Positions 13,442-33,992 of a stretch of DNA of 64,000 bases are shown here, piece after piece. Below the pieces are notes generated by a model. It was not told the DNA's origin. It saw only the letters and a program-made list of their open reading frames with translations, and did not search any database. Position 1 is the stretch's first letter. Each line of letters starts with the position of its first letter. Origin of the DNA: Thalia democratica (Eukaryota); NCBI GenBank assembly GCA_965202585.1, contig OZ241831.1, forward strand, positions 60,884,001 through 60,948,000. The letters run 5' to 3'. The position numbers were made by a program, and so were the translations under genes.

Positions 13442-15253
13442 AATTTCAACAAAATTTTTGCGTGTTAAAAAGCAGTTAATTTTTTTCAAAAAAAAAATGC
13501 TTTTCATTTAAAGTCAATTCACTATTTTAAAAACACTTTTACTTGAGTGACTGTTAAAGCATTCTACTGTTTAAATTTGTTGTGACTGTATTTTATTCAA
13601 AAATTTCAAATTTGTTTATTTACAAAGTTTTGTACATTAATTGCTAAAATTTCTTAGACTATTTGTACTTTTTTACATTTTTTGTAGTAACAATAATAAG
13701 TTCAATAATAATCCAACCGTTAATCGCGCTAATTTTTTATCATATGAGTATTATGCTAAATTTCTTTTGCCTTACAAACTTTAAAATTTGTCATTTTCTT
13801 AGTTTTTATTAAGTATTTTTTAATACTTTAAATTGTTATTTTAAATTTCCGTATTAACTTTTGTATTTTTTAAAATTTTTATTTAAAATTTTAGGTTTTT
13901 AAACAAAACATTTTTACTTCAAATCAGCTTTTTTTTTAAACAATTTTCTTTATTTACCAATATAGATTTTTTTAATTGCCATAACTGCTAGTTATTGCGA
14001 TACAAATTAGTTTAAGTCATAGTGCTGTAAACTGCCCTTATGTTATGCACTTGTTCTTTTATTAATAAACATATAAAATTAATCCAAGCTCTTTATATAT
14101 ATATCAAAAAAGTATGTAGAGTATATAGCTTGTATTAGTATAATATTTTGTAGTTTCGAAGGTTTGTATAATTTTTTTAATTACAATATAACCTAGTTTT
14201 TATTTTTTCACAAACTTTGAAACTTGAATTAAATGAATAAACCTAGAAGTACATAAGCAACTTACAAAAATAAATTTCTTTTTAGTTAACTATACTTACA
14301 AATTAAACATTGAAAATGGTTTAAAACTTAAAGATAAATGAAATAAGTAATACTAGTAACCTTTTAGATTTTTTTTCTCTTAAATAAAGTTTTATTTTAT
14401 GAAACAGTTAAAGTAGTTTAACATGAATTCCTTTAAATGTACAATTTCAGTCTTTGCTTTATATCATAGTCATTATTATCTAATAAAATATCTTTTCACT
14501 AAGTTAACATTTTTAGCTGCGAATATTCTTACTGCAAAAGCTTTAGTATAATTAGATTGTTATAAAACTTATAGCAGAAAATATTTTTAATTTAGTTTAA
14601 AAAAGTAAATTAAGCTTAAATCTTTAACAAACCAGTTAAACTGACCTTATTTTTTTTCATTTAATAAAAATTTAAGGTATATAAACAAATAAATTTTTGA
14701 TAAAAATTTTCATAAAAAAAAAAATTGTTAAAATAAGTAAGTAAATTGTAAATTAAACACTTATGTAGTTTTTCACTTTAATAAAATTTTTGCAGGAACA
14801 AAAAAAAAATTTGACTTTAAGAAATATAAGACAAGACGTGAAAGTTAGTTAAAACTTAAAAAATTAACATGCATTATTAAAGTTTTAAAATTAAGTGAAT
14901 TACTTAAGCGTACGATTTTGGCTTATAAATTTCTTTTTTCTTCTAGCTCTCTCACTTTTGGGCTAAAACTTTGCGTCTATTTGTAAAGTTCTTAAATGAA
15001 GAGAATAACTCGAGCGCGCTCCAGCGTACCACTCACTTTTCACTTTAGTTTCTTTTATTTCTCCAAATTTCTCTCAATTTACTATAGAGCTTTAAAGCGC
15101 GTGTTTACAATTAAAACAGCTGTATTTAACTGCCATCTTGACTATACCATGTCTGGCATCTATCATGGTAAATCGTGTTTTGTTTGCATATCTGCAGAAT
15201 AAAAATTAAGCATTAAAAAAACTCAGTGTTTTGAAGTGTTTATATATATATAT

Positions 15254-15810
15254 TAGAGTGCTTATACGGTGACCTTTGTGTTTACAGCTAAAAATTTTTT
15301 ACATTTGGCAATTATCACAAAAGAACCCTGTGCAAAGTTTTAGCCAATAAAAAAAAACTTCCATGTTATCACCATCAGATTTTTTAAAAACTACCCCAAT
15401 GCAATCTGTAATGAACCAAATAATAAGGTCTTAAAGTTTTAAGTGAAACTTTTTCTAGTGGCAATTATCATTAAAAATGGTTCTAAGTAATTTTTTGAGA
15501 AAGTTTTAAATTTCAGGTTTGTTTTTCAAAAAATCAAGAACTGCTTTAATAAATAAAATTTTAATCGTCTTAAATCATGGACAATGTGTTTTGATAATAA
15601 TTGGCACAGAAAAAATTCAAGCTAAAAACTTTAAGGCCGTATTTTTTGGTCCCATACAGATTGCATTGGGGTAGTTTTAAAAAATCTGATGGTGATAATA
15701 TAGAAGTTTTTTTTTATTGGCTAAAACTTCGCACAGGGTTCTTTTGTGATAATTGCCAAATGTAAAAAACTTTTAGCTGTAAACACAAAGGTCACTGTAT
15801 AAGCACTCTA
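15254..15810. mobile_element. Fold-back MITE (TAGAGTG termini, ~160-215-bp TIRs) in a (TA)n tract, hAT-like ends
   Basis: TAGAGTGCTTATACGGTGACC...GGTCACTGTATAAGCACTCTA; ATATATAT on both sides (compatible with an 8-bp TSD, but not diagnostic in a microsatellite). Confidence 0.75.
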
Positions 15811-15996
15811 ATATATATATATATATCAACACTTCAAAATAATTAGTTTTTTAAATGCTTAATTTTTATTCTGCAGATATGCAAACAAAACTCAATTTAC
15901 CATGATAGATGCTATGTAAGCTTCACATAAAAGCTCTAAGCACAAACTTACTCACTTAATCAGTTTATAAACACAATATACTGCACCCTATCACAA

Positions 15997-16069
15997 GTTT
16001 CCGTAGTGTAGCGGTTATCACGTTCGCCTAACACGCGAAAGGTCCCCGGTTCGAGCCCGGGCGGAAACA
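15997..16069 (+). tRNA. tRNA-Val: tRNA-Val(AAC)
   Basis: Identical to the 2333 copy; anticodon AAC; T5 terminator. Confidence 0.96.
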
Positions 16070-16546
16070 TTTTTATTGAATTAACCATCAATAATAGAAT
16101 GAGGTAAATTAATTTGGCCAAATTTTAAACAGCCACTCTTATAACTTATTAGAGGATTATTTGTTCCATAACTCTATAAAGACCCTGTTTTAAACTTTAA
16201 TTGACAATCTATGTGTCAAATTATTTTATACTCTACTTTGAAAATAGTTTTTATAAAATATATTGTAATGTTAAACTACATTAGGACCTGCAAGGTAACA
16301 ACAAATAAAAGTTTAATTAATTGAACAGATTTAACTATCATAGTCAACTAGGACGCATAAAAATAGAAATAAAGCATAATGAAATGAAAACATTAGAATA
16401 CAAAGAAACATTAGAATATTTGTATGATCGTCAATAGTTTTTTTTTCAAACTGTTAATAAATAGCTAAACAATTATCTCATGAGAAATCTTTTACATTTT
16501 TCAAAAGACCAACTATTTACTGTTGTACCTGTAAACTTGTAAACTT

Positions 16547-16883
16547 CAGGTAGGCAACGTTTTCAGTCGGAGGGCCAGATGTTGAAAAATTTAGTCCTTG
16601 GCGAGCCTGAACATTTTAATTTCGTTAATTTCACAAAAAAAATTATCCAATTCGTTTTGACAAAACTATTTCTATGTAGTTTTTTTACTATATCTAGTGT
16701 CAGTTTAAAATCTACCATAAGTTGTACCTAATAACTTTTTTGCTATTCATTTTGAATCTCAGAAAATATAGTATGAATTTCATGCGCTAGATTTATATGC
16801 TTTTGCGGGCCGCAGTTTTACCTTTTGCGGGACGGATTTCACTAAATTTTTGTTAACATTGGCAGGCCGTACGTTGCCCATTG
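16547..16883. mobile_element. Decayed hAT (Charlie-like) non-autonomous element
   Basis: CAGGTAGGCAACGT...ACGTTGCCCATTG imperfect TIRs; GC-rich GCGGGCCGCAG subterminal motifs. Confidence 0.5.
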
Positions 16884-32214: not shown

Positions 32215-32529
32215 CAATGGGCAACGTACGGCCTGCCAATGTTAACAAAAAGTTAGTGAAATCCGTCCCGCAAAAGCATATAAATCTAGCGCATGAAATT
32301 CATACTATATTTTCTGAGATTCAAAATGAATAGCAAAAAAGTTATTAGGTACAACTTATGGTAGATTTTAAACTGACACTAGATATAGTAAAAAAACTAC
32401 ATAGAAATAGTTTTGTCAAAACGAATTGGATAATATTTTTTGTGAAATAAACGAAATTAAAATGTTCAGGCCCGCCAAGGACTAAATTTTTCAACATCTG
32501 GCCCTCCGACTGAAAACGTTGCCTACCTG
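32215..32529. mobile_element. Decayed hAT (Charlie-like) element, mirror of 16547-16883
   Basis: CAATGGGCAACGT...ACGTTGCCTACCTG; 22-bp deletion between TTTTGCGGG direct repeats relative to the left copy. Confidence 0.5.
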
Positions 32530-32994
32530 AAGTTTACAAGTTTACAGGTACAACAGTAAAAAGTTGGTCTTTTGAAAAATGTAAAAGATTTCTCATGAGA
32601 TAAATGTTTAGCTATTTATTAACAGTTTGAAAAAAAAACTATTGACGATCATACAAATATTTGTATTCTAATGTTTTCATTTCATTATGCTTTATTTCTA
32701 TTTTTATGCGTCCTAGTTGACTATGATAGTTAAATCTGTTCAATTAATTAAACTTTTATTTATTGTTATCTTGCAGGTCTTAATGTAGTTTAACATTACA
32801 ATATATTTAATAAAAACTATTTTCAAAGTTGAGTATAAAATAATTTGACACATAGATTGTCAATAAAAGTTTAAAACAGGGTCTCTATAGAGTTATGGAA
32901 CAAATAATCCTCTAATAAGTTATAAGAGTGGCTGTTTAAAATTTGGCCAAATTAATTTACCTCATTCTATTATTGATGGTTAATTCAATAAAAA

Positions 32995-33067
32995 TGTTTC
33001 CGCCCGGGCTCGAACCGGGGACCTTTCGCGTGTTAGGCGAACGTGATAACCGCTACACTACGGAAAC
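32995..33067 (-). tRNA. tRNA-Val: tRNA-Val(AAC)
   Basis: Identical to the other Val copies. Confidence 0.96.
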
Positions 33068-33251
33068 TTGTGATAGGGTGCAGTATATTGTGTTTATAAA
33101 CTGATTAAGTGAGTAAGTTTGTGCTTAGAGCTTTTATGTGATGCTTACATAGCATCTATCATGGTAAATTGTGTTTTGTTTGCATATCTGCAGAATAAAA
33201 ATTAAGCATTTAAAAAACTAATTGTTTTGAAGTGTTGATATATATATATAT

Positions 33252-33807
33252 TAGAGTGCTTATACGGTGACCTTTGTGTTTACAGCTAAAAGTTTTTTAC
33301 ATTTGGCAATTATCACAAAAGAACCCTGTGCGAAGTTTTAGCTAATAAAAAAAAACTTCCATGTTAGCACCATCAGATTTTTAAAAACTACCCCAATGCA
33401 ATCTGTATGGGACCAAAAAATACGGCCTTAAAGTTTTTAGCTTGAATTTTTTCTGTGCCAATTATTATCAAAACACATTGTGCATGATTTAAGACGATTA
33501 AAATTTTATTTATTAAAGCAGTTCTTGATTTTTTGAAAAACAAACCTGAAATTTAAAACTTCCTCAAAAAATTACTTAGAACCATTTTTAATGATAATTG
33601 CCACTAGAAAAAGTTTCACTTAAAACTTTAAGACCTTATTATTTGGTTCATTACAGATTGCATTGGGGTAGTTTTAAAAAATCTGATGGTGCTAACATGG
33701 AATTTTTTTTTTATTGGCTAAAACTTTGCACAGGGTTCTTTTGTGATAATTGCCAAATGTAAAAAATTTTTAGCTGTAAACACAAAGGTCACCGTATAAG
33801 CACTCTA
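33252..33807. mobile_element. Fold-back MITE (TAGAGTG termini), mirror of 15254-15810
   Basis: TAGAGTGCTTATACGGTGACC...GGTCACCGTATAAGCACTCTA in a (TA)n tract. Confidence 0.75.
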
Positions 33808-33992
33808 ATATATATATATATAAACACTTCAAAACACTGAGTTTTTTTAATGCTTAACTTTTATTCTGCAGATATGCAAAAAAAACACAATTTACCATGA
33901 TAGATGCTAAGTAAGCTTCACATAAAAGCAGTTATGCACAAACTAACTCACTTAATCAGTTTATAAACACAAAATACTGCCTCCTATCACAA

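Follow-up and report, generated by a model that had tools for sequence, protein, structure and literature searches.

The DNA considered here is a 64-kb window of the Thalia democratica genome (C7:60884001-60948000; the host genome spans 802 Mb and is AT-rich, with ~25% GC), and its main feature is an ~18.7-kb palindrome whose arms carry mirrored sets of tRNA genes. Judged from its sequence, this palindrome forms the young inner part of a larger and older one, whose arms measure at least 15 kb, and three layers of identity surround a single centre: outer arms at ~92%, inner arms at 98.7% and a central zone at 99.9%. In the left arm the inner layer ends where a hAT transposon interrupts the arm, and identity falls from 98.3% to 92% at that very base, abruptly and not gradually. 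The reading favoured here, which we judge probable if only narrowly so, is that one arm has repeatedly been copied over the other, each time starting at the centre and proceeding outward, by fold-back repair or by long-tract conversion, and that the last large event was halted by the heterology of the hAT.

The locus clearly belongs to a known kind of structure, to which it adds a new example, and does not represent a new kind of system. What makes it notable is the 14-nt spacer, the presence of three datable layers, and a limit of arm copying that is marked by a transposon to ~20 nt. In bacteria, yeast and mouse, long palindromes that nearly lack a spacer count among the most unstable DNA structures known, and because the present palindrome is a natural and apparently fixed member of that notoriously unstable class, with 9.4-kb arms and a 14-nt spacer, it makes a useful test case that could serve to measure centre-outward homogenisation in populations.

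Three layers of identity around one centre

Inverted-repeat detection, BLAST and global alignment concur on the placement of an inverted repeat that is far beyond chance. A left arm of 9,361 nt (15156-24516) is 98.75% identical to the reverse complement of a right arm of 9,377 nt (24531-33907), and the two are separated by the asymmetric 14-nt spacer TTTGAATTTCACAT (24517-24530), with perfect complementarity on both of its flanks. The initial annotation, which had described an ~18.7-kb near-perfect palindrome with ~9.4-kb arms, a 14-nt spacer and arm-specific substitutions and indels, is thus borne out: a global arm-versus-arm alignment, trimmed of non-homologous edges, contains 9,181 matches and 116 substitutions (98.75% identity without gaps, or a divergence of 0.62% per lineage), together with 21 indel events of 1-34 nt, one of which is a (TA)n microsatellite. 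The substitutions comprise 63 transitions and 53 transversions, 36 of the latter being A/T. The window is free of runs of N and almost devoid of long open reading frames, with none of at least 120 amino acids found within the arms, and ARAGORN identifies 27 tRNA genes in it. Sequencing runs that contain window sequence are labelled either as the same organism or as marine metagenomes. Divergence between the arms is raised around the tRNA-Asp gene (18000-18600 / 30500-31100), with 21 substitutions in 600 bp (~3.5%), a patch that conversion may have bypassed or that may have been imported from another paralogue.

When the hAT is removed from the left arm, the two sides of the locus remain colinear about the same centre to ~15.1 kb per arm, from ~-3,250 to 39,180 in window coordinates (negative values lie to the left of the window, and the neighbourhood examined consists of the window and 100 kb on each side, 264 kb in all). 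In this outer layer the two sides are 92.4% identical as far as 10.7 kb from the centre, beyond which identity is patchy, at 82-92%, up to 15.1 kb. The left part occupies 1-2497 and continues to ~-3,250, with a tRNA-Lys gene at 1557-1630 (+) and a tRNA-Val gene at 2333-2405 (-), and the right part occupies 33908-39180, with tRNA genes at 33993 (Val), 34752 (Lys), 36551 (Val), 36925 (Lys), 37080 (Pro) and 39026 (Arg-TCG), such that further Val, Lys, Pro and Arg-TCG genes are mirrored. The transition between the layers is sharp: 5 differences in 299 nt are found inside the hAT site and 23 in 286 nt outside it (Fisher p = 3e-4), and a plateau of ~98.7% identity that extends over 7.7 kb ends within ~20 nt of the site.

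The hAT (2498-15155) is 12.66 kb long, is present in the left arm only, and is bounded by the terminal repeats CAGAGATG / CAGACATG; the high-identity arms extend outward as far as its inner end. It is flanked by intact copies of an 8-bp target-site duplication, GCATCTAT, at 2490-2497 and 15156-15163, and the right arm possesses the corresponding empty site, a single GCATCTAT on the other strand at 33900-33907 without a footprint. The family to which the transposon belongs is young and abundant, with at least 40 further copies at 97-99%, and the left-arm copy has acquired 20 private substitutions in 3,995 bp (0.50%), an age that is statistically the same as that of the arms (0.62% per lineage). 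Thus the hAT could predate the last arm copying. A scenario in which the outer arms diverged only after the hAT had blocked exchange was rejected, with the transposon copy at 0.5% as against an outer divergence of ~8%; because the copy and its family are young and the outer arms are ~8% apart, the outer divergence predates the hAT. The transposon adjoins a tRNA-Val gene, lying 93 bp upstream of it.

A third layer is found at the centre, where a near-identical zone (22852-26193) has 2 substitutions and one 2-nt indel per 1,660-bp arm, as compared to ~20.6 substitutions expected (binomial p = 7e-8). Substitutions are unevenly distributed along the arms as a whole (variance/mean 1.85, chi-square p = 5e-4). 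Because the central 1,660 bp are so much less diverged than the arms, at least one later, centre-anchored exchange is needed, and by this measure the present centre is younger than the arms. The suggestion that the palindrome had persisted in spite of its short spacer therefore has to be qualified. Within the spacer, 12 bases form a near-copy of the final 12 nt of the left arm, and CACATGTG, which spans the boundary between spacer and right arm, is self-complementary; the centre thus reads as a junction that was once symmetric and then underwent a one-sided slip of 12 nt. The central 166 bp have no homologue in the 264 kb examined. A truncated copy of a very high-copy interspersed repeat (23817-24350, mirrored at 24697-25230) lies 166 bp from the centre; the repeat has 5,047 candidate loci at ~86% identity, with a word depth of up to ~4e5 in the sequencing run X9. 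The copy is truncated at its 3' end, past which other copies extend, and is not at the junction.

Reads from run X9, which derives from the same organism, support the assembled centre. A 74-nt read-derived contig bridges 24487-24560, which comprises the 14-nt spacer and 30 nt of arm on either side, with 0 mismatches at a depth of 34.2; a hairpin loop in a k=31 graph gives a unit of just this size. Adjoining arm contigs in the run have depths of 63-68. This 1:2 ratio of centre to arm is that of a homozygous palindrome, because a heterozygous one would give ~1:3 and a rare chimera only trace depth. The palindrome is real and apparently homozygous, and the read-depth check called for in the initial annotation fits a true palindrome. 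Across sequencing runs, the 168-nt centre was recovered from X9 (0.64 of 11 words) and, as a weak share, from one marine metagenome, which is short of independent confirmation; a metagenome pattern scan for the arm ends with a gap of 0-20 nt returned one contig, sharing just two 15-mers, a chance match.

Similar layering is seen in the surrounding DNA, where the tRNA gene cluster consists largely of palindromes: the 264 kb contain four large ones (P1-P4) at the least, and smaller ones are nested among them. They are built from two types of tRNA gene block, block A with Arg-TCT, Ile, Asp and Arg-ACG genes and block B with Arg-TCG, Pro, Lys, (Lys) and Val genes. P1 (-99999 to -74730) is an older A|A palindrome with arms of at least 12 kb at 88-92% identity and a spacer of ~3 kb, and it runs off the examined region; P2 is a B|B palindrome and a B-type relative of outer P4; P3 (-51121 to -26015, C7:60832880-60857985) is an A|A palindrome with a 3-kb spacer and ~11-kb arms carrying Arg-TCT, Ile, Asp and Arg-ACG genes; and P4 is the 18.7-kb palindrome with its outer layer. 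The inner 8 kb of the P3 arms are 98.6-99% identical, followed by an abrupt step to ~92%. In the outer block, all pairs of P1-left, P1-right, P3-left, P3-right and a fifth copy are 91-93% identical, in a star-like pattern, whereas in the inner block each arm most resembles its partner in the same palindrome (98.6% and 92.4%), as against 87-89% between palindromes. Because independent late formation would make the outer arms pair too, the likeness of the inner arms points to later, centre-proximal exchange; in P3 and, more weakly, in P1, homogenisation thus appears to have followed palindrome formation. Exchange between arms, which the initial annotation had raised as a possibility, is accordingly supported, indirectly, by the step at the hAT, the near-identical centre and the inner-arm pairing of neighbouring palindromes.

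The older architecture of P4 bears on the direction of copying. A 'Val- | Val+' palindrome core (32703-34358), with arms at 32703-33473 and 33586-34358 that are ~90% identical and separated by a 112-nt spacer, includes the outer limit of the young palindrome (33907) within its right arm, and its mirror image consists of 15156-16361 and 2033-2497. Inside and outside the hAT site alike, the left Val core is uniformly ~95-96% identical to the right core arm of P2; for the right Val core, identity to its P2 relative drops from 94% inside the site to 89-91% beyond it. Because the right core changes its identity to P2 at the hAT site and the left does not, the right arm is probably the one that was overwritten and the left, hAT-bearing arm the donor, by what is a marginal call. 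An apparent second discontinuity at the hAT site, between the left flank and P2, dissolved, given the uniform identity of the left core.

Origin of the young layer

Any account of how the young layer arose has to accommodate what is observed, namely the structure itself, the identity step at the hAT, the near-identical centre and the homogenisation of the sister palindromes. Under the favoured reading, one arm, probably the left, would have been copied onto the other from the centre outward, either by fold-back (snap-back) synthesis that followed breakage close to the centre or by long-tract arm-to-arm conversion. Copying would have halted at the first large heterology, the 12.66-kb hAT, and the end of the copy would have been resolved in register within the older ~92%-identical outer arm. 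A second, later event of like kind would then have recopied the central 1.66 kb and left the present centre, with a symmetric junction turned asymmetric by the 12-nt slip to give the 14-nt spacer. What we infer in this scheme is the occurrence of a break, the chemistry of fold-back and the identity of the donor. In yeast, fold-back priming at short inverted repeats yields spacers of 6-35 nt, hairpin loops of more than 12 nt are poor Mre11 substrates, and fold-back duplications end in homology-mediated secondary junctions with trimming of heterologous flaps (PMC10622511). Features of both kinds are found at the present locus, which has a head-to-head junction with a short asymmetric spacer (14 nt) and an outer end that is closed by homology, where the young arms enter 92%-identical inverted sequence in register at the hAT boundary. 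Domain matches to Ku and Mre11 are present in the host genome; a CtIP/Sae2 domain search of the genome returned no match, in a search that lacked a positive control.

An unlikely alternative is that the inner ~8 kb (Asp-Lys-Gly-Gly-Lys-Ser) was once single, in the long spacer of an old inverted repeat, that a single break and snap-back doubled this segment de novo, and that the arms have diverged since without later exchange. The 14-nt asymmetric spacer is typical of fold-back junctions, and the neighbouring palindromes are in keeping with this alternative: P3, with its A-type arms, has a related Gly-Lys-Ser segment once, its 3-kb spacer containing single Gly, Lys and Ser genes that are 83-87% identical to the innermost part of the P4 arms, and P2, the B-type relative of P4, is without such an inner segment between its Val genes. 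The non-uniform divergence of the arms, however, with 2 substitutions at the centre as compared to ~20.6, demands at least one later exchange, and P1 and P3 exemplify homogenisation of already palindromic inner arms within the same cluster.

Somewhat more doubtful is an origin by short-tract gene conversion in an old, full-length palindrome, which would be commoner near the centre, where the partners are closer, and would involve neither break nor fold-back, the hAT merely ending homology. Conversion is the established mechanism of Y and X palindromes (PMC3723533), identity is graded or stepped outward from the centre in P3 and P4, and patches of identity are mosaic, P2 included. Yet short tracts predict a ragged gradient, and what is seen is a plateau of ~98.7% over 7.7 kb that ends ~20 nt from the hAT; moreover, a palindrome already 8-10% diverged would need to have retained its near-zero spacer over a long period, and conversion cannot rebuild a centre.

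The coincidence of the outer limit of the young arms with a transposon end raises the question of whether the hAT transposase made the duplication directly, by aberrant or alternative transposition or through a hairpin-capped excision end that was then replicated, as in the Ac/Ds rearrangements of maize. Copies of the hAT family are young and numerous, and hAT excision leaves hairpin ends on the flanking DNA. Alternative transposition would leave a junction at the transposon end without the normal duplication or an empty site, whereas here GCATCTAT is intact, and the normal 8-bp duplication and clean empty site point to simple insertion. Similarly, a replicated hairpin would put the hAT at the centre of the palindrome, whereas the transposon is at its outer edge and a second hAT end was not found at the centre. 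A direct role of the transposase is thus highly improbable.

Least credible of all is an assembly artefact, whether from a fold-back chimeric read, from palindromes created during whole-genome amplification or from the head-to-head joining of two haplotypes: long reads are known to yield palindromic chimeras (PMC6218980), the total of 18.7 kb is near one long-read length, the central 1.66 kb is nearly identical and a spanning read was not inspected, but the bridging contig has about half the depth of the arms and not trace depth, the arms differ chiefly by substitutions (116, as against 21 indels), the flanks are not mirror-identical (hAT and target duplication in the left arm only, outer flanks at 92%), the outer divergence of 8-10% is too high for two haplotypes given 1.25% between the inner arms, and sister palindromes with 3-kb spacers lie nearby. 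None of the marks of a fold-back artefact, that is, rare junction reads, arms identical bar read errors, or mirror-identical flanks, was found.

Several points weigh against recopying from the centre as the origin of the young layer. Taken at face value, the age of the hAT copy (0.50%) falls slightly short of that of the arms (0.62%), and the deeper history of the Val core is mosaic. The assignment of the donor arm depends on comparisons of ~300-700 nt and is marginal. P3 shows its step in identity without a large insertion; therefore heterology is not required to end a tract, and the coincidence with the hAT is a single case. The break, any lost sequence and short seed repeats are hypothetical. 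Finally, X9 may stem from the very sample that was assembled, depth estimated from contigs is imprecise, and the read support comes from contigs, a spanning long read with both arms and flanks not having been seen.

A broader form of recopying from the centre, that palindromes of this cluster and perhaps of the genome are self-renewing, with repeated central breakage and fold-back resynthesis recopying the arms centre-outward, is speculative and on balance unlikely. If true, it would mean that concerted evolution decays with distance from the centre and that near-perfect long palindromes persist in the germline. Identical, oppositely oriented tRNA genes may be hotspots of breakage or template switching.

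Comparison with known palindromes and inverted duplications

Sex-chromosome palindromes, such as P1-P8 of the human Y and those of the primate and mouse X, are kept alike by arm-to-arm gene conversion (PMC3723533, PMC8327919, 10.1101/800185). The present palindrome resembles them in possessing multi-kb, very similar inverted arms with multi-copy genes and signs of exchange after formation, and its arms (9,361 and 9,377 nt) reach the length of at least about 8-10 kb of the large sex-chromosome examples. It differs in its spacer, 14 nt as opposed to kilobases, and in its overall identity, which at 98.75% is below the >99% characteristic of the Y/X type and the >99.9% of the sex-chromosome palindromes themselves; only the central 1.66 kb exceeds 99.8%. 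The cargo is also different, consisting of 14 tRNA genes transcribed by RNA polymerase III and not of protein-coding, germline-expressed genes such as the testis-expressed families of the sex chromosomes, and homogenisation is only centre-proximal, the old outer arms remaining at ~92%. If the animal is a salp, it would also be hermaphroditic and lack sex chromosomes.

Fold-back inverted duplications described in yeast (PMC10622511) and human (PMC3907307) share with this locus a head-to-head junction, a short asymmetric spacer and an outer end resolved by homology in an existing repeat, and the base-precise stop at the hAT would be accounted for if a heterologous flap had been trimmed. The known cases, however, are new somatic, laboratory or disease events, often terminal and with dicentric intermediates, and the human ones have spacers of 1.5-7 kb, whereas the locus described here is interstitial and apparently fixed, with an arm divergence of 1.25%. 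Inverted triplications formed by origin-dependent inverted-repeat amplification (ODIRA) likewise have palindromic junctions seeded at short interrupted inverted repeats, where a secondary rearrangement can enlarge the interruption and stabilise the junction (PMC10766186). ODIRA predicts three copies, the middle one inverted, and two junctions, whereas self-comparison of the 264 kb revealed only two high-identity arms, the next best relative of any part being 83-87% identical; with only two copies, the palindrome is not of this type.

Engineered long palindromes in the mouse are reportedly stabilised by 'centre-break' changes (Akgun 1997, Cunningham 2003), and the small asymmetric central alterations reported in those studies are reminiscent of the 12-nt slip that would have given the 14-nt spacer. 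Unlike the present palindrome, which is apparently homozygous and has accumulated substitutions, the mouse constructs are said to rearrange within a few generations. Plastid inverted repeats, which undergo copy correction and boundary shifts, are similar in that recombination preserves the likeness of two inverted copies, with a homogenised zone whose limit can shift, and dissimilar in that the palindrome considered here is nuclear, has a near-zero spacer and is only partially homogenised.

tRNA genes and growth of the cluster

Each arm encodes, in mirror order, tRNA-Val-AAC, Asp-GTC, Lys-CTT, Gly-GCC, Gly-GCC, Lys-CTT and Ser-AGA. The mirrored set of 14 genes, doubling Val, Asp, Lys (twice), Gly (twice) and Ser, had been recognised in the initial annotation and is found by ARAGORN, with confirmation by Rfam at scores of 43-72 bits; T-run terminators lie 3' of the genes. 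Proceeding inward from the outer ends, the Val genes (15997-16069, +, and 32995-33067, -, the latter called by ARAGORN) are identical, and of the Asp genes (18084-18155, -, and 30883-30954, +) the left copy has two changes, one of them in the T arm, with scores of 52.8 bits on the left and 57.3 bits on the right. The outer Lys genes (19765-19838, +, and 29203-29276, -, the right copy found by both programs) are identical, and the outer Gly genes (20343-20413, -, and 28628-28698, +) score 65.6 and 63.1 bits, the right copy having one C>T change. In the inner Gly pair, the left copy (21511-21581, +, 42.8 bits) has acceptor- and anticodon-stem mismatches and a 1-nt deletion in the D loop and is, to judge by these lesions, probably decaying; the right copy (27460-27531, -, 53.5 bits) has the same stem mismatches without the deletion. 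The inner Lys genes (21995-22068, -, and 26973-27046, +) and the Ser genes (22931-23013, -, and 26032-26114, +) are found by both ARAGORN and Rfam. An Rfam scan in gathering mode missed all of the Val genes; the possibility that they are pseudogenes was rejected because a local scan scores the left-arm copy at 63 bits, and the miss is a filter effect.

Overall, four of the seven pairs are identical between the arms and three differ, and both members of the inner Gly pair are damaged. Candidate loci for tRNA-Val-AAC number at least 177 genome-wide, and all 40 that were scored are 100% identical. Because several of the duplicated copies are damaged, a dosage benefit is unproven. The seven additional tRNA genes are better regarded as passengers of palindrome instability than as demonstrably selected dosage. 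Many tRNA-Val-AAC loci in other clusters occur as minus/plus pairs 2-13 kb apart (for example C7:35008398/35010748, C6:80003135/80007216, C1:15423990/15427832 and C2:17500195/17512807), which hints that the 'Val-|Val+' core recurs elsewhere in the genome. Each arm also contains an older nested mirror, as at 19677-22156, where Lys+/Gly- faces Gly+/Lys- with flanks ~88% complementary over 170 nt; thus inverted duplication is visible at three scales, ~2.5 kb, 18.7 kb and >40 kb.

In the 264 kb as a whole, 61 tRNA genes are arranged in mirrored blocks from -93,929 to 58,508 (~152 kb), and Val copies stretch the cluster to ~-121 kb. Direct duplicates at offsets of ~49-68 kb relate P1 to P3 and P2 to the outer part of P4, and because palindrome blocks have also been directly duplicated, the cluster grew by both tandem and inverted duplication. 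The claim that tRNA genes here multiply by inverted duplication is accordingly upheld by the palindromes and their mirrored blocks, and the further claim that they do so rather than by tandem arrays is contradicted by the direct duplicates; the locus shows expansion of a tRNA cluster by mirrored and tandem duplication together. Nuclear tRNA clusters and arrays are found elsewhere among eukaryotes, as in the tandem arrays of Xenopus and Entamoeba and on zebrafish chromosome 4. The present cluster is like them in its many canonical genes, dozens within ~150-180 kb, that lie close together and have T-run terminators, and unlike them in having mirrored blocks at several scales in place of head-to-tail units, direct duplication being found only at the 49-68 kb scale.

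A few other features of the cluster were noted. Every copy of block A contains tRNA-Ile-AAT and tRNA-Asp-GTC genes 7 nt apart on the same strand (for example at 49028-49181, -92849 to -92696 and -44097 to -43944), an arrangement that suggests a possible conserved dicistronic pair. A 116-nt tRNA detected by Rfam at 43828-43943 (-, 48 bits), absent from the ARAGORN calls, presumably contains an intron. The P1 spacer is related to window positions 54131-55439 and not to the P3 spacer, and the interval between P3 and P4 contains long arrays of a 33-nt tandem repeat (-25185 to -11896).

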